The translations under genes were made by a program, and so were the position numbers. From Salpingoeca rosetta (Eukaryota > Protista > Choanoflagellata): a stretch of DNA of 63,227 nt. Of the stretch, positions 10,271 through 39,487 are shown piece after piece. Numbering within the stretch: the stretch's first letter is position 1; every line of letters starts with the position of its first letter. The stretch is taken from positions 957,460 to 1,020,686 of the forward strand of contig JAWQFM010000021.1 in NCBI GenBank assembly GCA_033442325.1. The letters run 5' to 3'. The notes beneath the pieces were generated by a model. That model ran no database searches, was not told where the DNA came from, and saw only the letters and a list, made by a program, of their open reading frames with translations.

Positions 10271-10790
10271 ATGATGATGTCTGCGACGACGTGGCTGCTG
10301 CGCCGCAAGTTCCCGACAGTGCAGCAGGTTTGTTTTGCTGCAAAATGAATGAGAAAGGAGTAGCAAAGGCGGCGGGGGAAACGAGAAGGTGCTGTTTACT
10401 TGCAAGGGCAACAACGCAAATGACAGCGTGTGGCAAACACAACACACACACACGCACACACACACACACACTCACTCACTCACACACTCACTCACTCACA
10501 CACACACACATACACACACCATGCATCCTCACAACAGATGCAGACGGACGAGCTGGATCAATTGGACAAGAAGAAGCGCATCCTGCTTGACGTTCGGCCA
10601 GAAGAAGAGTACGCCATCAGCCATCTTCCAGATGCCATTCGCGTAGATCCAGACAACGTTGGTGAGTGTGTGTGTGTGTGTGATTGGTTGTGGGTATGTG
10701 CTTGGGTGAAAACGGAGAGAGTAGGTTGCAGGATTTGGAGCGATGCCCTTGGGGTCGCCTTTCCCTTCAACTTCGCCCTCACACACACAC

Positions 10791-10864
<74 letters not shown>

Positions 10865-11206
10865 CAAGCACAGGAAGCGCTGAGGGAAAAGGGGTACAAG
10901 CCTGGAACGCCAGTCGTCTGCTACTGCAGCGTCGGGTACAGGTCAAGTAAACTGGCACAGATGCTTGCCGAAGCATCAACGCAGGCCGCCGCCCCCACAG
11001 ATTCCACGGCAACGACGCAAGAGGGCAAGGACAACGCGTGTAAAGTGGACCCCAAAGACTGCTACAACTTGGAGGGCTCCATCTTCAAGTGGGCAAACGA
11101 AGGCCGGCCCATCACCAACACTAGCGGCGGCACCGCCAACAAGGTGCACCCATACAACGGCGTCTTCGGCCATCTCCTCGACGCAAACCTGCGCCACCAA
11201 CTCTGA
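10271..11206 (+). CDS. Single-domain rhodanese/sulfurtransferase-like protein (3 exons)
   Basis: Exon 1 MMMSATTWLLRRKFPTVQQ|gtttgt. ILLDVRPEEEYAISHLPDA, active-site loop VCYCSVGYRS, YNLEGSIFKWANEGRP, VHPYN. Confidence 0.88.
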
Positions 11207-12133
11207 TCCTATGTTGCGTGTGGGACGTGTACTGGAGTGCGGTGGTGATTTTCGTTGCTGCTGCCACGCCATGTTTGCCAGTTACTTCCTTTTCTTGTTA
11301 CAACCCCCTTTCTTACTGTCCGCTGCCCCAACGCACCGCCTTGGATGCCTTACCTGCCTTTTTCTTGCGTTTGCATTAATCGAATCCCACCGAAGTTCCA
11401 ACACCTCCTTCGTTGCGCTGCACAACAGCGCTACAGTTTCGCAGTTTCGGGGGAACGCTGTATTGTATGACCAGAGATGGAACAGAGCGTAACGGGCGGG
11501 GAGGAGAAAGGTGAATGAAGGCTGTGGGGGAGGACAAGCGACGACGGAAAGGCGACATTCAGTATGGAAGGGCAAAACAACGGGCGCATGGTCGGGGGAC
11601 GAAAAGCGGGAAGGACGAAAAGTGGAGGGGGAACGGGAAGGACCACTGGACCACCAAACAGAAACAAGTGTGCTTGGGAGGAAACGGTGAACCAAAGGCA
11701 GCTGTAACGTGCCAACACGTGAAAGGACCGACAAAGGCACACGACAGGATGACGAAGAATCTACACGCACTGCAGAGGAAAGTTGATAGCACCGTAAACT
11801 GACAAGGCGGGCACTTGCCGTGTCTCCTCACAAGAACAAAGAAATACAACAAGAGCCGGTGTGCTCGTGCCTGCGCAACGAAAGGAAAGAATGGAAGCTT
11901 GCAAAAATGTTGTACCGTCAACAAACGCAGCAGAATGGCAGAAGACTATCCAGCACCATGGAACAAGGAAGCGACAAAGCAACAAAGCAACAATCTGCCA
12001 TGATACAGCAATGGCAAGCGTGAACTGAGAGTGTGAAGGAGGGGGATGACGAGACGAGACGCCTAGATGTAACACCGAACCAGTGACGCAACACCACCAC
12101 CCTTGTTGGCGCACGGGTGGCGGGCTGTTGCGT

Positions 12134-12934
12134 TCAGGCCTCAAACACGAGGATGCCGCGCACGAGGACACAGGACGGGTCGTTGATCACAATCTCGGCG
12201 GCTGTGCGCTTGCTGGCCCATTCTGTGGGTGCGAGGGGGAATGCGTCAGCCTTGCTGCCGGTGCTGAAATCGACGACGGCAACATGGGCGTCGTGTCCGC
12301 CAACGAGCGGCTTGCCGTTAAAGGTGACAGCGTCCGGCACTGGGTATGGGTTGCCATACTGCACGTCACACACCAGGACCACCCGGAACTGCTTGCCTGC
12401 AGGCAAATTCAGGTGCTGCAGCTCAGGCGGCACATCCTTACACTTCTTCGTGTACTCGAGAGCATAGTCGAGGTCGTGCGTAAAGTAGAAGCCAGCACCG
12501 TACCAGCCATTGTCAGTCTTCTGCAGCTGTGCGAAATCGCCGCCCAGGATGCTCATAGCAACTTTGAATGACGGCACGCCGTGGAACACGCGCTGCAGGC
12601 GAAGATGCACATCGGGCTGCATCATGGCCTGGTCCAGCACCTTGTACGATGAAGCGCCAGCAGGGTGGAGAGTGACTTGAGCAAGGACAGCAGCCTCCTC
12701 GGCGTTGGTGGGCGCACCCGTTGCCGTATCGATCTTGTACTTGGGATGGAACGGGTGGTTGGCGCTGCTCATGTGGCCAAGATAACGGGTCTGGTTGCGG
12801 TGAACTGCGCCGTTGAAGGCAGCGTTCTTCTGGCTGCACTGCACAACAACGACACCAGTTACAGCCTTGCCAAAGGGCTGCAGAGGAGCTGCTGTTGCTT
12901 CATCACTTGAGCGGCCGCCAGCTTCCGTGATCAT
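12134..12934 (-). CDS. PARP-like ADP-ribosyltransferase catalytic exon (H-Y-E triad)
   Basis: LQRVFHG...GWYGAGFYFTHDLDYALEY...VLVCDVQYG...GHDAH...AAEIVI matches the diphtheria-toxin-like ART/PARP fold signature. Confidence 0.8.
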   Translation of the reverse strand: MITEAGGRSSDEATAAPLQPFGKAVTGVVVVQCSQKNAAFNGAVHRNQTRYLGHMSSANHPFHPKYKIDTATGAPTNAEEAAVLAQVTLHPAGASSYKVLDQAMMQPDVHLRLQRVFHGVPSFKVAMSILGGDFAQLQKTDNGWYGAGFYFTHDLDYALEYTKKCKDVPPELQHLNLPAGKQFRVVLVCDVQYGNPYPVPDAVTFNGKPLVGGHDAHVAVVDFSTGSKADAFPLAPTEWASKRTAAEIVINDPSCVLVRGILVFEA

Positions 12935-13063
12935 CTGTCGTGTGGTTGTGGGGTGGGAGACAAGAGAAGAGTGGGTGACCGGTGAGTGTGAAAGGGAGTG
13001 ATGAAGGGATGGGATGAAGGGGCGTGATTAACATGTCGCAGCAACCCATTGCTTCACACGAAT

Positions 13064-13111
<48 letters not shown>

Positions 13112-13673
13112 TCTCACCTGTTTGGCGATGGCGATGCCCTTGTCGTGGGCAGCGCCAACCGCAGCAATGCGCACGGACGCGCGTGTTGGATGAGTCACCA
13201 TGAACGACTGCAGTGGTTCGAGGACGTCCGGCTGCCACTTCCACGCCGCATTGGCAGGACCGTGCAGCTGCTCGTGTTGCTGTTCCATATCAACTGCATG
13301 CTGTTCTTTGGCGGCTGTGTACTGCCCACCCAGCGTGCCTTGCAGCTGAACAAAGGAAGGTCGATTACCGCTCACATCAAAGCACTGGCCAAGCACCTGC
13401 TGCACCGCATCGCTCAGCCTGCGACCATCAACCTCAACGTCGAGTGGAAGGTATCAACTGGAAGTCCCAAGATCGGGGGCCAAAGGGCTGCAGAGGAGCT
13501 GCTGTTGCTTCATCACTTGAGCGGCCGCCAGCTTCCGTGATCATCTGTCGTGTGGTTGTGGGGTGGGAGACAAGAGAAGAGTGGGTGACCGGTGAGTGTG
13601 AAAGGGAGTGATGAAGGGATGGGATGAAGGGGCGTGATTAACATGTCGCAGCAACCCATTGCTTCACACGAAT

Positions 13674-13721
<48 letters not shown>

Positions 13722-16700
13722 TCTCACCTGTTTGGCGATGGCGATGCCCTTGTCGTGGGCAGCGCCAACCGCAGCAATGCGCACGGACGCGCGTGTTGGA
13801 TGAGTCACCATGAACGACTGCAGTGGTTCGAGGACGTCCGGCTGCCACTTCCACGCCGCATTGGCAGGACCGTGCAGCTGCTCGTGTTGCTGTTCCATAT
13901 CAACTGCATGCTGTTCTTTGGCGGCTGTGTACTGCCCACCCAGCGTGCCTTGCAGCTGAACAAAGGAAGGTCGATTACCGCTCACATCAAAGCACTGGCC
14001 AAGCACCTGCTGCACCGCATCGCTCAGCCTGCGACCATCAACCTCAACGTCGAGTGGAAGGTATCTGCCCTTCTCATACGCTCTGGCAATTGTGGAGATG
14101 TTCGCGCCACCCAGAGCAGCGTATTTGCCGTGGTGCCATGGTTTGATGTTGAGGAACAGCTCCCACACGAGAACGGCAAAGGAAAACACGTCCGTGTCCA
14201 TGCGGAGCTCCTGTCCCTCCAACAGCTGTTCCGGCGATGCCCACAGCGGTGTGCCACCACCATGTGTCAGCACGGACTTGTCTGCCGACTTGAAGGTGCT
14301 CAGGCCAAAGTCCGTCACCTTGGCGGAGAGTGATGCGTCCAGCAGCACGTTGGGCGACTTGAGGTCGCGGTGCACGACGTTGTGGGCGTGCAGGAAAGCC
14401 ATGGCACATGCCACCTCGAAAGCAATGCGCAGGCGGGTTGGCCCATCAAGCGGTTGCTTCTTCACGTGCAACAAGTCGTAGAGGGACCCGTTCTCGGCCC
14501 AACTCAGCACAAAGGCCAGCGTCTGGCTTTGCTCATCGTGGGTGAGGCCAAGGAAGTGCACAATGTTGGGATGACGGAGGGAGAGCAGGATGAGCGCCTC
14601 GCGTCGCAGCTGCTTCAAGTGGTCTGGAATGTCCTCAGACCCGGCAACGCATGCAATGATCTCGGGGAGGCGAGGGCGATTCTGCACTGGGGTTTGCTTG
14701 AGAGCAACCGGCTGTCCTGCCAGCTCTGCCTTGAAGAGAGAACCAAAGGCGCCACCAACTTGCTTGCCGTTGATGTCGAAAACTCGCACTTTTCCCACAA
14801 AACGGGACGACGGGATGTTCAGGTTCAACACGCCCTCTGTATGCAGACGCAAGAGGTGGTATGCAGACGATGAGGCGATGAAGGCGAGAACCGCGTGGGT
14901 TGCAGATTTCAAACACAACCAACGTAAGTGAAATGGACGTTGTGTAATTCGACACCACCAACAGAACTGCACTGACCGAGTTGCTCTTCCCAGTTGTCCT
15001 TGAGTTCTACGCGTGTCTTGAAGAAGGCGTTCTCCTGTGCCAACTGTTGTGAATGCGATTCTGGCACACAAGAAGAAGAGATGGGGTTGGAGTGAGGAGG
15101 AAAGCAACTGAGAAAACCAAAAAGAGAGCAGAGAGTAAACACCTGCACCGCGCTGTCAACAGTCACGCACAACATTACCAAAGTTCTTGACGATGTCTTC
15201 AGAGTTGCTGAGAGATTCACTCAGCGCAGTAACTTGCTGCTCAAGTTCGGCGATGCGCGCGTCTGAAGTGGGGTGGATGAGGGAGTTGAAAGATGTTGTG
15301 AGAGGAATGGGGAGCACGGGACAAAGGAGGGGGAGAGGATAGGTGCAGGTGGAAACGTTGGCAATCGCATCCACTCACCTGCATCATTGAGGGAGGATGT
15401 CTTGGACGCGAGTTGCTGCTGGACTGACTGGAGGTTCTGCTGCAGGCTCGAGACTTGCTGGTGCAACTTCGTGTTCTTCTGTTGTAGACTTGCAGTCTGC
15501 TTGCTGAGGCTGCCGTTCTTCTTCTGCAGCGCATTCTTTGCCTGCTTCAGCTTTGCGTTTGCTTGTTGGACCGCGCTGAGTTCTGCATCTGTGTCGTGCC
15601 CAGGTACACCGTGTCGTGTGGCGTGGCGTGGAAACATGAGACAGGCTGACGCACAGAAAGTGTGTATCGAAGCACGGTGGTGGTTGCTCACCTTTCTCTT
15701 GCAGCTTCTTCTTGAGCGCAGCAATCTCCGACTGGTATGAAAATACAATGTTGAAGGTGAATGCGTGAAACGTGTGAGATTGTGGGCACAATGGAAGAGC
15801 AATACAGGTCAAGTGCGGCTGGAGAGCGACAACGCACCGACGGCTTGGACGATGAGCCTGGCGAAGACGGGGGAGCGACTGCGTCGTATTTCGGGTGGGA
15901 AGGTTGCGGCGTGTTTTGCTGGCGGCGCTCGCTCATGCGCTTGTCAAACGCGTGTCTCGCATCTTCGTCCCTGTCGCGACTAATACAACAGCATTGAGGC
16001 AAACGGCAAGAGTGGTGTGGGCTCAGGCAGCAACATCGTCACGCAGTCGCTCGGCTTGGCGGGGGCTTATGTCGAAATACATTGCACGTATCAAACGGGA
16101 TAATCAACGTACAACTTGACGGTGATGTTGCGATGGGGATCGAGCGCATTGGCGATGGTGATGGCGTGGTCGGCAGTCATCCAAACTCGGCTCAAACTGC
16201 AGGACGTAGAACAAAGAACTAGATTGTGAGAAGAAATGGTTGATGTGACATGTCCCCGAATGCAAGCCAATGGCAAAACGACATGCCATGCTTGAAAGCG
16301 CATAGGGCAGAGTGAACGTACTCCAGGGTCTGCAGGCGGTGGTTGGACTTGAGGGCAACAGCAAGGGCGTCGATGTACGCGTCACTGCGAAAGAGTGGAA
16401 GGCGAGCATTGATTGAACATAAGGAAAGTGTGAATCACACGAAACCACCACAAACCAAACGTATTCAGCGCATCATTGTCAATAATACAGTTCACGCTCG
16501 TGTGAGCGCGTGAGTATATGAGTGTGTGAGCGGGTCAGCTACAAGCATCCGTCACTCAACGCAAACTCACAACACTTGTCACCCAACAGAGTCCACAACA
16601 CATGCACCCAAGTACTCAATTGCGCAAACAAACCTCGCTCAACCACAACAACAACACCAACCATCACAAACACACACCACACACTCCCATCACCTTCCTC

Positions 16701-19700
16701 AGCACAACACCATGTACAACGGACACAGCGGACAATCACAACACAAACACCAACAAACATCAACGCATGTGCAGGCTGCGAGTCAACGTACTTGCTGTTC
16801 AGTCACACGTTCCACGCAGCAACAAAGTTGTAGTTGCGCATTCAGCCGCAACGTCATGCCACGTCATCCCAAGAGCAACAAAACACAAAAAGCAACACAA
16901 ACCAAACGTATGCAGCGCATCATCATCATCACATATACAGCGCATCTTCATCATCATCATCCACAATAGTACAGTACACTCTTGTGTGAGCGCGTGAGGC
17001 ATATGAGTGTGTGAGCGGGTCAGCTACAATCATCCGTCACCCAACGCAAACTCACAACACTTGCCACCCAACAGAGTCCACAACACATGCACCCAAGCAC
17101 TCAATTGCGCAAACAAACCACGCTCAACCACAACAACAACACCAACCATCGCAAACACACACACACACTCCCATCACCTTCCTCAGCACATTCACCATGC
17201 ACAACGGACAATCACAACGGACAATCACAACACACACATCAACACAAACATCAACACATGTGCAGGCTGCGAGTCAACGTACTCGCTGTTCAGTCACACG
17301 TTCCACGCAGCAACAAAGTTGTAGTTGCGCATTCAGCCGCAACGTCATGCCATGCCACGTCATGTCGTGTCATGTCATGTCATGTCAAATGGTGGTTCCC
17401 AACAGCAACAAAACACAAAAAGCAACACATCATCATCATCATCGTCATCATCATCATCATCATCCACAATAGTACAGTACACTCTCGTGTGAGCGCGTGA
17501 GTATATGAGTGTGTGAGCGGGTCAGCTACAAGCATCCGTCACTCAACGCAAACTCACAACACTTGTCACCAACAGAGTCCACAACACATGCACCCAAGCA
17601 CTCAATTGCGCAAACAACCCTCGCTCAACCACAACAACAACAACAACACCAACCATCACAAACACACACCACACACTCCCATCACCTTCCTCAGCACAAC
17701 ACCATGCACAACGGACAATCACAACGGACAATCACAACACACACATCAACACAAACATCAACACATGTGCAGGCTGCGAGTCAACGTACTCGCTGTTCAG
17801 TCACACGTTCCACGCAGCAACAAAGTTGTAGTTGCGCATTCAGCCGCAACGTCATGCCATGTCATGTCATGTCATGTCATGTCAAATGGTGGTTCCCAAC
17901 AGCAACAAAACACAAAAAAGCAACACAAACCAAACGTATGCAGCGCACCATCATCATCATCATCATCCACAATAGTACAGTACACTCTCGTGTGAGCGCG
18001 TGAGTATATGAGTGTGTGAGCGGGTCAGATACAAGCCTCCGTCACCCAACGCAAACTCACAACACTTGTCACCAACAGAGTCCACAACACATGCACCCAA
18101 GTACTCAATTGCGCAAACAAACCTCGCTCAACCACAACAACAACAACAACACAAACCAACACAAACACATACCACACACTCCCATCACCTTCCTCAGCAC
18201 AACACCATGCACAACGGACAATCACAACGGACAATCACAACACACACATCTACACACACACATCTACGCATGTGCAGGCTGCGAGTCAACGTACAGGCTT
18301 TTCAGTCACACGTTCCACGCAGCAACAAAGTTGTAGTTGCGCATTCAGCCGCAACGTCATGCCATGTCATGTCATGTCATGTCATGTCAAATGGTGGTTC
18401 CCAACAGCAACAAAACACAAAAAGCAACACAAACCAAACGTATGCAGCGCATCATCATCATCATCATCATCCACAATAGTACAGTACACTCTCGTGTGAG
18501 CGCGTGAGTATATGAGTGTGTGAGCGGGTCAGCTACAAGCCTCCGTCACCCAACGCNNNNNNNNNNNNNNNNNNNNNNNNNNNNNNNNNNNNNNNNNNNN
18601 NNNNNNNNNNNNNNNNNNNNNNNNNNNNNNNNNNNNNNNNNNNNNNNNNNNNNNNNNNNNNNNNNNNNNNNNNNNNNNNNNNNNNNNNNNNNNNNNNNNN
18701 NNNNNNNNNNNNNNNNNNNNNNNNNNNNNNNNNNNNNNNNNAACATCCAACACACACACATCAACGCATGTGCAGGCTGCGAGTCAACGTACAGGCTTTT
18801 CAGTCACACGTTCCACGCAGCAACAAAGTTGTAGTTGCGCATTCAGCCGCAACGTCATGCCATGCCACGTCATGTCGTGTCATGTCATGTCATGTCAAAT
18901 GGTGGTTCCCAACAGCAACAAAACACAAAAAGCAACACAAACCAAACGTATGCAGCGCATCATCATCATCATCATCCACAATAGTACAGTACACTCTCGT
19001 GTGAGCGCGTGAGTATATGAGTGTGTGAGCGGGTCAGCTACAAGCATCCGTCACCCAACGCAAACTCACAACACTTGTCACCCAACAGAGACCACAACAC
19101 ATGCACCCAAGCACTCAATTGCGCAAACAAACCACGCTCAACCACAACAACAACACCAACCAACACAAACACATACCACACACTCCCATCACCTTCCTCA
19201 GCACAACACACAATCACAACGGACAATCACAACACAAACACCAACACACACACATCAACGCATGTGCAGGCTGCGAGTCAACGTAAGCGCTGTTCAGCCC
19301 CACGTTCCCCGCAACAAAGTTGTAGTTGCGCATTCAGCCGCAACGTCATGCCATGCCATGTCATGTCGTGTCATGTCATGTCATGTCAAATGGTGGTTCC
19401 CAAGAGCAACAAAACACAAAAAGCAACACAAACCAAACGTATGCAGCGCACCATCATCATCATCATCCACAATAGTACAGTACACTCTCGTGTGAGCGCG
19501 TGAGGCATATGAGTGTGTGAGCGGGTCAGCTACAAGCCTCCGTCACCCAACGCAAACTCACAACACTTGTCACCCAACAGAGTCCACAACACATGCACCC
19601 AAGCACTCAATTGCGCAAACAAACCACGCTCAACCACAACAACAACAACAACACAAACCATCACAAACACATACCACACACTCTCATCACCTTCCTCAGC

Positions 19701-21485
19701 ACAACACCATGCACAACAATCACAACGGACAATCACAACACAAACACCAACACACACACATCAACGCATGTGCAGGCTGTGAGTCAACGTACTCGCTGTA
19801 CAGTCACACGATGCACGCAGCAACAAAGTTGTAGTTGCGCATTCAGACGCAAAGTCATACCAAGAACAAGTCACGTCGTGTCATGTCATATCATGTCAAA
19901 TGGTGGTTCCCAAGAGCAACAAAACACAAAAAGCAACACAAACCAAACGTATGCAGCGCACCATCATCATCATCATCATCCACAATAGTACAGTACACTC
20001 TCGTGTGAGCGCGTGAGTATATGAGTGTGTGAGCGGGTCAGCTACAAGCCTCCGTCACCCAACGCAAACTCACAACACTTGTCACCAACAGAGTCCACAA
20101 CACATGCACCCAAGCACTCAATTGCGCAAACAAACCTCGCTCAACCACAACAACAACAACAACACCAACCATCACAAACACACACCACACACTCCCATCA
20201 CCTTCCTCAGCACGATACCATGCACAACGGACACAACAGACAAGCACAACACAGACATCAACACAAACATCAACGCATGTGCAGGCTGCGAGTCAACGTA
20301 CAGGCTTTTCAGTCACACGTTCCACGCAGCAACAAAGTTGTAGTTGCGCATTCAGCCGCAACGTCATGCCATGCCATGTCATGCCACGTCATGTCAAATG
20401 GTGGTTCCCAACAGCAACAAAACACAAAAAGCAACACAAACCAAACGTATGCAGCGCATCATCATCATCATCATCCACAATAGTACAGTACACTCTCGTG
20501 TGAGCGCGTGAGGCATATGAGTATGTGAGCGGGTCAGCTACAAGCATCCGTCACCCAACGCAAACTCACAACACTTGTCACCAACAGAGTCCTCAACACA
20601 TGCACCCAAGCACTCAATTGCGCAAACAAACCACGCTCAACCACAACAACAACACCAAACATCACAAACACACACCACACACTCCCATCACCTTCCTCAG
20701 CACGATACCATGCACAACGGACACAACAGACAAGCACAATACAAACATCAACATGCAGGCTGCGAGTCAACGTACGGGCTGTTCAGTCACACGTTCCACG
20801 CAGCAACAAAGTTGTAGTTGCGCATTCAGCCGCAACGTCATGTTGTGTCATGTCGCGTTCCACACCCAACGCGCGCGCACGAGTCGTTCGGGTTTCATAT
20901 GTGTCCACGGCACCGTGTTCCATGATCGCGCACATGCAACGTGTGGCACACAGTCGTCAATGAAATGTTCAAGAGGAGGCGGTGAGCGCGAGACTTGATT
21001 CTTCTTGTGAACCTCATAACCTCATTTGCGCAAGTCGTCAATTCAGTTGAGCGGACACAGCAACACTGTCTCATGAGCGTCGCATTACATTACTGTTCAC
21101 CATCACCACAACGTTAACGCGTCTTCACACTTCGTTGCTACAGCACATGCATGCTCACTCAAGTTCAACAGCTATGACTTACGCTCTGTGATCCGAGCAG
21201 ATGGTTGAAACAGCGTGTGCGATCGAATGAACATGGAACAAGTCGTGAGCAAGCGACAAAACACGAATGCAACTACCACCCGTGACAGCATGTGTGCTCC
21301 CCCTTCCAATTGCTACCCCAGCAACGTTTGCAAGCGACCAAGCAGCTATCCCTTCAAATCTTCTGCAGGACTCACTTGAAGGTTGGTCCACATGTGTTGT
21401 TGGCGATGGATCGCAGCTCATTCTTGTACCCCTGGTGAAGCCAGTCCATCGCCGCCAGCTTGGTTTCCAGCTCCTGGGAGGTCAT
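12134..21485 (-). CDS. LRR (RI-like, with N-cap) - coiled coil - TKL-type protein kinase - PARP/ART catalytic domain fusion protein
   Basis: Exon 1 21485-21376 MTSQELETKLAAMDWLHQGYKNELRSIANNTCGPTF+aa|gtgagt. LRR exons 16384-16322 (63 nt, DAYIDALAVALKSNHRLQTLD) and 16196-16113 (84 nt, LSRVWMTADHAITIANALDPHRNITVKF). Coiled-coil exons ~15980-14970. Kinase exon ~14835-13728 (VALK, HRDLKSPN, DFG, GTPLWASPE). PARP exon 12934-12134 (VFHG, YGAGFYFT, AEIVI). Splice phases checked by hand for the LRR exons and the kinase-PARP junction are consistent. Confidence 0.8.
12869..14065. repeat. Direct tandem duplication: 587-bp copies 12869-13455 and 13479-14065 separated by a 23-bp unique filler
   Basis: Copies appear identical by eye at offset 610, including (CA)n length. 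Filler AACTGGAAGTCCCAAGATCGGGG. Confidence 0.92.
13728..14835 (-). CDS. TKL (MLK/Raf-like) Ser/Thr kinase exon
   Basis: GGAFGSLF, VALK, RREA, LRHPNIVHFLG, HRDLKSPNVLL, KVTDFGLS, GTPLWASPE, DVFSFAVLVWE. Confidence 0.92.
16792..16794 (-). CDS. Candidate 3-nt microexon CAA (specifies Asn)
   Basis: gactgaacag|CAA|gtacgttgac. Confidence 0.6.
17283..17285 (-). CDS. Candidate 3-nt microexon CGA (specifies Asp)
   Basis: gactgaacag|CGA|gtacgttgac. Confidence 0.6.
17790..17792 (-). CDS. Candidate 3-nt microexon CGA (specifies Asp)
   Basis: gactgaacag|CGA|gtacgttgac. Confidence 0.6.
18295..18297 (-). CDS. Candidate 3-nt microexon CCT (specifies Leu)
   Basis: gactgaaaag|CCT|gtacgttgac. Confidence 0.6.
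18793..18795 (-). CDS. Candidate 3-nt microexon CCT (specifies Leu)
   Basis: gactgaaaag|CCT|gtacgttgac. Confidence 0.6.
19287..19289 (-). pseudogene. Inactivated microexon copy CGC (donor GT>TT)
   Basis: ggctgaacag|CGC|ttacgttgac. The upstream flank also diverges from the other units. Confidence 0.5.
19793..19795 (-). CDS. Candidate 3-nt microexon CGA (specifies Asp)
   Basis: gactgtacag|CGA|gtacgttgac. Confidence 0.55.
20302..20304 (-). CDS. Candidate 3-nt microexon CCT (specifies Leu)
   Basis: gactgaaaag|CCT|gtacgttgac. Confidence 0.6.
20776..20778 (-). CDS. Candidate 3-nt microexon CCC (specifies Pro)
   Basis: gactgaacag|CCC|gtacgttgac. Confidence 0.6.
21183..21185 (-). CDS. Candidate 3-nt microexon AGC (unique, outside the array)
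   Basis: Minus strand: gatcacag|AGC|gtaagt, a canonical acceptor and perfect donor. Confidence 0.6.
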
Positions 21486-21704
21486 GACTTGTTGTTGTCG
21501 ATGAATGCTCCTTCAGGTGTCTTGAGTGTGTGCTTGCACCACTTTTTGTGCAAGAGTGTGGCTGTGTGCTGTTGCCTGCAGGCAAAGGCAGAAGGCAAGC
21601 CTGCGAGAGTGTGATGCTTCTGTCCTGTTGTTCTTGTTGTCCTGTTCAGCCACAGCTGTTTTCACTCACAAACAAAAGAAAGTTGCAAGAAGGCAAAGGC
21701 AGCT

Positions 21705-21780
<76 letters not shown>

Positions 21781-22145
21781 AAGCCTCGTTGAGTCGTTGG
21801 TTGAGTCGTTTCACTGTTTCAGTGCGTTCGGACAGTGGCTGGGGTGTTGTGGTTCTGGTGGTGTTAGGGTGACTGTGTGCTTTGTTTTGTTTTGTTTGGC
21901 TGGAGGAAGTTTGTGGTGTGTTTTCCTGCGAATTTTCACCAAGCAAAGCCAACATCAATTCTGACTTTCCACCCCTCGGCAATTTTGCCCTTCTCCCCAG
22001 CAAACCAAACTCACATCATCACCCTTTCCCCTCGCTTGCTTGCCATGCCGTGCTGTGACTCGACTGAGTTTTACTTCCATTCCATTACAGACAACCAACG
22101 ATCTACCTCCCTCTCTACCACCTCCCTCTCCCTCCCTCTCTGTCC

Positions 22146-39487
<17,342 letters not shown>

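Follow-up and report, generated by a model that had tools for sequence, protein, structure and literature searches.

A predicted PARP-type ADP-ribosyltransferase domain fused to a TKL protein kinase in the choanoflagellate Salpingoeca rosetta

What kind of protein is encoded by the intron-rich locus that lies between positions 12,134 and 21,485 of a 63,227-nucleotide stretch of the genome of the choanoflagellate Salpingoeca rosetta? This stretch, called here the window, corresponds to positions 957,460 to 1,020,686 of contig JAWQFM010000021.1 (G000:C21:957460-1020686; the labels C2 to C34 denote contigs of the same genome), and an initial annotation made from its letters had described the locus as a single spliced gene uniting a leucine-rich repeat (LRR) module, a coiled coil, a TKL kinase and a PARP domain, in the manner of a cytoplasmic innate immune receptor. 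The chain of domains does belong to one gene model, which is already annotated in public databases but under-described there. What is new is the PARP-type domain, a predicted ADP-ribosyltransferase (ART) that keeps the H-Y-E triad, fused to a TKL kinase, together with the family that surrounds this gene.

Gene model and catalytic domains

The gene lies on the minus strand, with its ATG at 21485 and its stop codon at 12136-12134, and its ten exons (Table 1) add up to 2727 nt, that is, 908 codons and a single terminal stop. A script check of frame and borders found GT-AG at the ends of every intron and compatible exon phases throughout. The coordinates, strand and single spliced gene of the initial annotation were exact, the one open frame agreeing with a public model and with 20-odd paralogs. 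This public model (XP_004991747.1 / EGD75826.1 / UniProt F2UGS6, 883 aa, hereafter P0162), named 'TKL protein kinase [Salpingoeca rosetta]', matches the exons of the window all the way from EA through the stop codon, each blast segment giving 95-100%, and likewise skips the tandem duplicate described below; its first 12 residues, in contrast, are taken from the last unit of an intronic array and not from the conserved exon E1 at 21485. Exons were searched singly, the full-length fold is that of P0162, which does not include exon E1, and the joined coding sequence served for checks of frame, length, motifs and hydropathy only. In the last of these, the best 19-residue Kyte-Doolittle mean was 1.43, in agreement with the proposed absence of a transmembrane segment.

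Table 1. Coordinates of the exons and other features of the locus (window positions unless a contig label is given)
Feature	Position	Strand	Description
Exon E1	21485-21376	-	110 nt, ends in phase 2; start codon and N-terminal cap, ending ...SIANNTCGPTF
Exon EA	16384-16322	-	63 nt, phase 2 to 2; helix of the first LRR-like unit (DAYIDALAVALKSNHRLQTL), 21 residues
Exon EB	16196-16113	-	84 nt, phase 2 to 2; one 28-residue LRR-like unit (second unit)
Exon EC	15979-15838	-	142 nt; linker, charged, proline/serine-rich, predicted disordered
Exon ED	15731-15692	-	coiled coil
Exon EE	15588-15379	-	coiled coil
Exon EF	15262-15179	-	coiled coil
Exon EG	15060-14977	-	coiled coil
Exon EH	14836-13728	-	1109 nt; TKL protein kinase domain and helical tail of ~70 residues
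Exon EI	12934-12134	-	801 nt including the stop; predicted PARP-type ADP-ribosyltransferase domain, last 266 residues
Perfect tandem duplication	12869-14065		587 bp twice, offset 610, 23-nt filler, 100% identical
Tandem array in intron 1	16471-20960		~9 units of ~500 bp, each with AG|CNN|GTACGT on the gene strand
Assembly gap	18557-18741		185 N inside one array unit, intronic
13 distant PARP-like copies	C25:56134, C24:1202269, C2:37546, C20:1226870, C28:969889, C32:33659, C13:1698684, C27:1038649, C34:18171, C33:64092, C34:396244, C25:355939, C27:6148		elsewhere in the genome

The C-terminal domain carries the main finding. An HMMER scan of 1.84 billion representative sequences retrieved 176 relatives, with E values of 1e-30 or better for 22, and 41 of the 176 form the alignment, A1, on which a family profile and an AlphaFold2 (AF2) model are based. 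In A1 the Tyr of G-x-G-x-Y-F (G-x-G-F-Y-F) is invariant and the Glu of A-E-I-V is at least 90% conserved, while the His of F-H-G is present in most members without being among the columns conserved at 90% or more; in the 908-aa model the triad would be formed by H760 (FHG), Y792 (GFYF) and E889 (AEIV). The AF2 model reaches a predicted local distance difference test score (pLDDT) of 92.6 and a predicted template modelling score of 0.91, and all its top Foldseek matches are PARP catalytic domains (PARP3, PARP1, PARP4 and tankyrase, E ~5e-8, prob 1.0). With VIA-align, Z scores of 13.8-14.9 were obtained over 150-169 residues (root-mean-square deviation 2.2-3.1 Å), the best being those of PARP12 (14.9; 158 residues, 2.7 Å), PARP14 (14.3), tankyrase 2 (14.2), and PARP15 and PARP10 (14.1 each). 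A phmmer search of the PDB with the single PARP exon gave no match; the A1 profile alone matched, reaching ZAP/PARP13 (2.2e-5) and PARP4 (4.7e-5), and also PARP16, PARP12 and PARP15. In this profile alignment the H and E columns of the family fall on the substituted triad positions of ZAP, whose triad is Y-Y-V. The look-alikes that a language model proposes for the domain are PARP clusters as well, and in PADLOC the PARP-like domain has no match and the kinase matches generic kinase models only.

Judged by fold and family profile, the C-terminal domain is a divergent PARP-type ART that keeps H-Y-E, too divergent for the Pfam threshold and with a predicted activity. A PARP domain retaining this triad had been proposed from the letters of the window, and it is borne out by both lines of evidence, although the domain stays under the cut-off that Pfam sets; a lack of matches to ART/PARP profiles, the outcome that the initial annotation had named as fatal to its proposal, is narrowly what Pfam alone returns, and it is overturned by the A1 profile and the fold. 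Since the PARP-like domain scores under the Pfam threshold, databases name the members of the family as kinases only, and the precomputed Pfam lists of close family members contain kinase families, to which one list adds a coiled-coil family, but no entry for PARP or LRR. S. rosetta is covered by a survey of PARPs (PMC4245714) that makes no mention of a kinase-PARP gene, an omission presumably due to the escape of this domain from Pfam.

As for the kinase, Pfam PF07714 (PK_Tyr_Ser-Thr) matches with E 9e-39 and 133.8 bits, against a cut-off of 23.1, and PF00069 (Pkinase) with E 1e-36 and 127.2 bits. The nearest solved chains all belong to the TKL group (CTR1, 1.1e-32; RAF1, 8e-26; TNNI3K, 1.2e-25; and B-RAF), and the placement in this group is made from these relatives, the HRDLKSPN motif and the NCBI name. 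The motifs VALK, HRDLK, DFG and SPE are found at residues 316, 428, 448 and 473 of the 908-aa model, and across 22 family members the catalytic residues (Lys, Glu, His-Arg-Asp, Asn and Asp-Phe) either show no variation or reach a conservation of 90% or more. The kinase is active-looking, with its catalytic residues in place and activity predicted, and the intact motifs described initially are confirmed with the exception of one glycine, discussed below. Between the linker and the kinase, exons ED to EG match many coiled-coil Pfam families (EE in particular), and the AF2 model of P0162 contains one helix of ~95 residues (156-250) with a modest pLDDT of 50-75, both of which bear out the proposed coiled coil.

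The whole gene, its upstream region and the intronic array are included in an inverted segmental duplication of at least 11.5 kb (window positions 11502-22998 and C21:1034041-1045884), with ~90% DNA identity between two copies that lie ~70 kb apart. The partner gene, 95% identical and referred to here as the paralog, has the public model XP_004991757.1 (P0151, 839 aa). Exons are 92-98% identical to those of the paralog, versus 84-88% for introns, the exceptions being EC, ED and an in-frame gap of 105 nt in EE, and no frame-breaking indel is present in the alignment of the ten exons. The ratio of non-synonymous to synonymous substitution rates (dN/dS) is 0.08 in the kinase (dS 0.22, dN 0.017) and 0.74 in the linker exon EC; in the PARP catalytic core, 7.5 synonymous and 2.5 non-synonymous differences give proportions (pN/pS) of 0.007/0.066, a ratio of ~0.1. 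These values indicate that the kinase and the PARP core are under purifying selection.

The N-terminal module and its first exon

The N-terminal module consists of a cap, encoded by E1, followed by the 21 residues of EA and the 28 of EB, about two repeats in all. The AF2 model of P0162 places helices at 12-25, 41-50 and 66-82 and strands at 31-34 and 58-61 (pLDDT 76-89), which make up two beta-alpha units only (31-82), E1 not being included. When the LRR regions of paralogs are used as phmmer queries, E1, EA and EB are matched at the expected positions, weakly (E 0.1-2). More distant paralogs carry clear LRR_6 arrays (P0155, 62.7 bits; P0003, 43.1 bits; also P0005, P0010 and P0011), and PF27087 is listed for longer LRR-bearing paralogs in precomputed annotations. 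EA is 96.8% identical to its counterpart in the paralog, and its flanking intron 55-84%. As far as profiles and model tell, the LRR of this copy is a reduced remnant, a vestigial cap and about two repeats of ribonuclease inhibitor (RI) type, and not a variable sensor. Of the N-capped RI-like LRR proposed initially, the cap and some two units stand, together with their positional likeness to the LRR_6 paralogs, at a level below every Pfam LRR threshold; the idea of a variable LRR acting as sensor does not, the module being vestigial and nearly identical in a paralog of 95% identity.

E1 is favoured as the true first exon because it is intact in the paralog, fits in phase and resembles the N-termini of LRR-bearing paralogs. 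Both its ATG and its GTGAGT donor are kept at the locus of XP_004991757.1 without any indel, its end in phase 2 is the one needed by EA, P0010 has TCGPTLK at its N-terminus, and P0003, P0155 and P0153 have related caps. A homolog of E1 was also found by tblastn (E 5e-10) in a further paralog, par2 (C23:852000-866500). The public model of the partner gene starts with 3-4 different residues, traced by eye to an array unit, and such differing public starts in two near-identical genes look like picks of a nearby ATG by the predictor.

Within 21378-21485 the two copies differ by four replacements in 8 residues (D>F, G>D, Y>A, N>D), and the ~6.5 non-synonymous changes, against ~1.5 synonymous ones, fall on too small a number of sites for selection to be called. 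A 90-nt candidate LRR exon at ~21272-21183 (phase 2, LRR-like) was rejected, as the paralog has lost the acceptor AG and carries a frame-breaking indel of 7 nt there; this is the least conserved stretch of the paralog alignment. The 288 bp just upstream of the array (20880-21167) are 99-100% identical between the two loci, with neighbouring sequence at 67-92%, which reflects either recent gene conversion or constraint (a promoter or enhancer?).

The intronic array and the tandem duplicate

Intron 1, from E1 to EA, is ~5 kb long and filled by the array. The unit anchors on either side of the assembly gap are 498 bp apart, so that the register is kept; the ungapped array of the paralog has ten units, and a collinear alignment leaves ~490 bp unmatched. 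Because the paralog array has one more unit, one may hide in the gap; frame continuity is unaffected by it, since no exon of either model lies near. Each unit has one site, the sites spanning 16791-20775, at which the two N bases vary more than any other column of a core of ~150 bp that is otherwise almost constant, and 7 different dinucleotides, linked to unit subtypes, occur in 15 units of the two arrays. Longer exons inside the units were rejected, since every frame that fits phase 2 runs into a stop, either no more than four codons away from the GTACGT donor or directly behind the CGCAG acceptor, and among the exon options only the 3-nt one survives stop-codon reading. A genome search located the unit at this locus and that of the paralog (C21:1036089-1040948) and nowhere else; it forms an intronic minisatellite confined to the locus and its inverted duplicate.

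A further peculiarity lies between the kinase and PARP exons, where the stretch repeated in tandem comprises the kinase tail, an intron and the first 66 nt of EI. The full protein needs the pairing of donor 13727 with the distal acceptor 12935 (an intron of 793 nt), while the use of a decoy acceptor at 13545 would give a frame-breaking pseudo-exon of 427 nt (13544-13118). The paralog carries the same duplication, and its own two copies are 100% identical over 618 bp. Because the copies are internally identical while the loci differ by ~5%, the duplicate is judged to be old and kept homogeneous within each locus. The public models of both paralogs skip the pseudo-exon, and purifying selection on the PARP core suggests that the PARP part is translated in this way.

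Alternative explanations of this gene structure have to be weighed here. The main product could be a kinase only, if acceptor 13545 were used, translation ended ~50 codons past the kinase exon and the PARP exon were left as an untranslated remnant. In favour of such an outcome, the two acceptors are the same in sequence, as are the 183-nt introns that precede them, splicing to the proximal one removes a short intron comparable to the other internal ones of this gene, and the length of the pseudo-exon is not a multiple of 3 and places a stop at ~13436-13434. However, the excess of synonymous over non-synonymous differences in the PARP core, the retention of the duplication in a paralog whose public model skips the pseudo-exon, and the same kinase-PARP junction in paralogs such as the C23 locus, where the alignment shows no duplicate, make a kinase-only product unlikely. 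Even less can be said for a decaying duplicate, a pseudogene whose open frame would be the residue of a recent duplication: the segmental duplication is indeed very recent, and the internal duplication and satellite-filled intron are odd, but ten exons free of frame-breaking change and better conserved than the introns, with a kinase dS far above its dN, render it extremely improbable.

The remaining alternative is that the array units are 3-nt microexons or recursive splice steps, each adding one codon to the first LRR loop and together giving a variable specificity peptide. Every unit but one does keep AG, exactly 3 nt and GTACGT; entry and exit phases fit; and phase 2 places the two N bases at codon positions 1-2, with the constant C as wobble base, hypervariable within a near-invariant core. 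On the other side, the array is limited to two young duplicate loci, and in par2 the homologs of E1 and EA are joined in the same phase across an array-free intron of ~635 nt, a direct E1-EA splice yielding the same short loop as there. Moreover, the variants travel with linked unit subtypes and need not be independent, the donor GT is replaced by TT in one unit, the public models make no use of microexons, and nine consecutive 3-nt exons are, to our knowledge, without precedent. We regard microexons as highly improbable, and the same holds for their consequence, that splicing of the array would lengthen the first LRR loop by about nine codons and that array length and unit order would set a variable peptide of the kinase-PARP protein. 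The specificity module of the initial annotation is, in short, not upheld, with an array present at two duplicate loci only and a paralog that joins the same exons without it. The structure that we retain is that of ten exons, with the array spliced out and the pseudo-exon skipped.

The kinase-PARP family and its possible role

The PARP-like domain is found at 37 loci in the genome, 23 close and 13 distant (Table 1), and at most of the close ones a kinase exon lies just upstream. Several members share a contig and are separated there by no more than a few hundred kb, and the genome has about 23 kinase-PARP genes, of which this gene is a young member. Where annotated in S. rosetta, the heads of these proteins are LRR (LRR_6) or ankyrin modules; in other species the kinase-PARP core carries ankyrin, WD40, MORN or thioredoxin-like heads, and a TPR head occurs on a PARP-like domain alone, without a kinase. 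SH3-like modules are also among the heads of the core. Complete open reading frames from the transcriptomes of Microstomoeca roanoka (ankyrin, coiled coil, kinase, PARP-like) and Didymoeca costata have kinase and PARP-like domain on one mRNA, and the sources of the relatives include one non-choanoflagellate protist.

A sister architecture is represented by PTSG_11903 (P0015, 1728 aa), which carries the same PARP-like domain family at its C-terminus in the order LRR-Roc-COR-TIR-PARP-like. It has a Roc-COR switch and TIR where this gene has a coiled coil and a kinase, and its domain belongs to a more divergent branch (E 1e-20 to 1e-28 versus 1e-70 or better). The 13 distant copies are probably members of this LRR-Roc-COR-(TIR)-PARP family. 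Several of them lie a few kb from LRR_6 exon clusters, near contig ends.

Around the gene, pieces of open reading frame on the plus strand at 10430-11206 resemble, by eye only, a rhodanese-type domain (with a CYCSVGYRSS loop) and are separated by introns with CA repeats, and the upstream neighbour (22709-24220, minus strand) has a long open reading frame with WD40-like sequence and introns rich in CA repeats.

Among known systems, the mono-ART PARPs (PARP12, PARP13/ZAP, PARP14, PARP15 and PARP10), PARP4 and tankyrase share the ART fold of this domain, and tankyrase and PARP1-4 have the same H-Y-E arrangement; sequence identity with known PARPs is, however, 12-20%, and their WWE, macro, zinc-finger, SAM and ankyrin partners are absent from this gene, in which a protein kinase is fused instead. 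LRRK2/Roco kinases, TNNI3K, RIPK4, CTR1 and RAF resemble this gene in their TKL-type kinase and in the LRR or ankyrin repeats at the N-terminus, but none of them has both the coiled coil and the C-terminal ART, and the Roc-COR GTPase and WD40 tail of LRRK2/Roco are both missing here: no Pfam match to Roc or COR was obtained in the exons or the close paralogs, although both are present in P0015. With nucleotide-binding LRR receptors (NLRs) and other receptors with RI-like LRRs, the longer paralogs share RI-type (LRR_6) repeats and the logic of a repeat head joined to an effector; NLRs, in contrast, carry their LRR C-terminally, whereas here about two sub-threshold repeats are N-terminal. Taking into account that neither NACHT/NB-ARC nor Roc-COR is present, the gene is neither an NLR nor a Roco. 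Full-text searches of the literature yielded no description of kinase and PARP catalytic domains in one polypeptide, nor of these accessions.

The reading to which we give a modest preference is that of a soluble protein of ~900 residues, with a cap and about two RI-type LRR units, a disordered linker, a coiled coil, a TKL kinase and a PARP-type ART, belonging to a family of sensor-effector signalling proteins. The coiled coil would dimerise or oligomerise the protein and the small N-terminal repeat module would bind a partner; the resulting proximity may lead to trans-phosphorylation between kinase domains, after which the tethered ADP-ribosyltransferase could modify itself or nearby targets with NAD+, and one polypeptide would thus generate two covalent signals. 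Across S. rosetta and other choanoflagellates, a constant kinase-PARP core is combined with exchangeable repeat heads (LRR, ankyrin, WD40, MORN), and it is because of this exchange that the family most likely serves lineage-specific stress or defence signalling, following a sensor-effector logic whose sensor part is reduced in this copy. The immune-receptor proposal seems plausible at the level of the family and weak for this copy.

Several observations count against this preferred reading. In the PARP part, Pfam PF00644 gives exon EI 18.9 bits (E 0.0012), under its gathering cut-off of 26.7, and the paralogs 14-20.5 bits, while the decoy acceptor, identical in sequence to the authentic one, is the nearer of the two to the donor, so that the predominant isoform could be a truncated product that lacks PARP. 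In the kinase, the first glycine of the G-loop is replaced (VGGAFG), as it is family-wide. At the N-terminus, none of the 150 best matches of a genome-wide LRR_6 search falls in the window, Pfam LRR models find nothing up to E 10 in exons E1, EA and EB, the public protein or the close paralogs P0151 and P0153, E1 is absent from the public model, and the module is almost unchanged between two young paralogs, save for the four clustered replacements in E1. No Pfam match to NACHT/NB-ARC was obtained in any exon, the close paralogs or the longer family members, and among RNA-derived protein fragments searched with the kinase exon none is closer to the locus than 54% identity. Finally, the order of the domains, the purifying selection, the size of the family and the exchange of its heads are shown, whereas enzymatic activity, oligomerisation, ligand binding and the link with defence are all things that we infer.

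A rather unlikely but reasonable alternative is that this kinase serves signalling in general, has a regulatory tail in its ADP-ribosyltransferase domain and plays no part in defence; the family would then be a product of ordinary TKL diversification and its heads would be scaffolds. Choanoflagellate kinomes are very large and rich in architectures, the LRR of this copy is vestigial, the kinase dN/dS is typical of housekeeping constraint, and Pfam finds no TIR or death-fold domain in this gene any more than a NACHT, all of which would fit such a kinase. More typical of conflict systems, on the contrary, are the ~23 paralogs, several of them clustered on the same contigs and with swapped heads, and the sister family in which the same PARP-like domain is placed on LRR-Roc-COR-TIR.

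The interest of this particular copy is tempered by its vestigial LRR and by the dependence of PARP translation on the skipping of a duplicated pseudo-exon. Protein kinases and PARP-type ADP-ribosyltransferases are each well known, and it is their fusion in one polypeptide that constitutes the new element. Genome editing has been reported in S. rosetta. If the PARP-type domain is active, the fusion would provide a compact system for cross-talk between phosphorylation and ADP-ribosylation, and the family to which it belongs would be a candidate pre-animal sensor-effector family.

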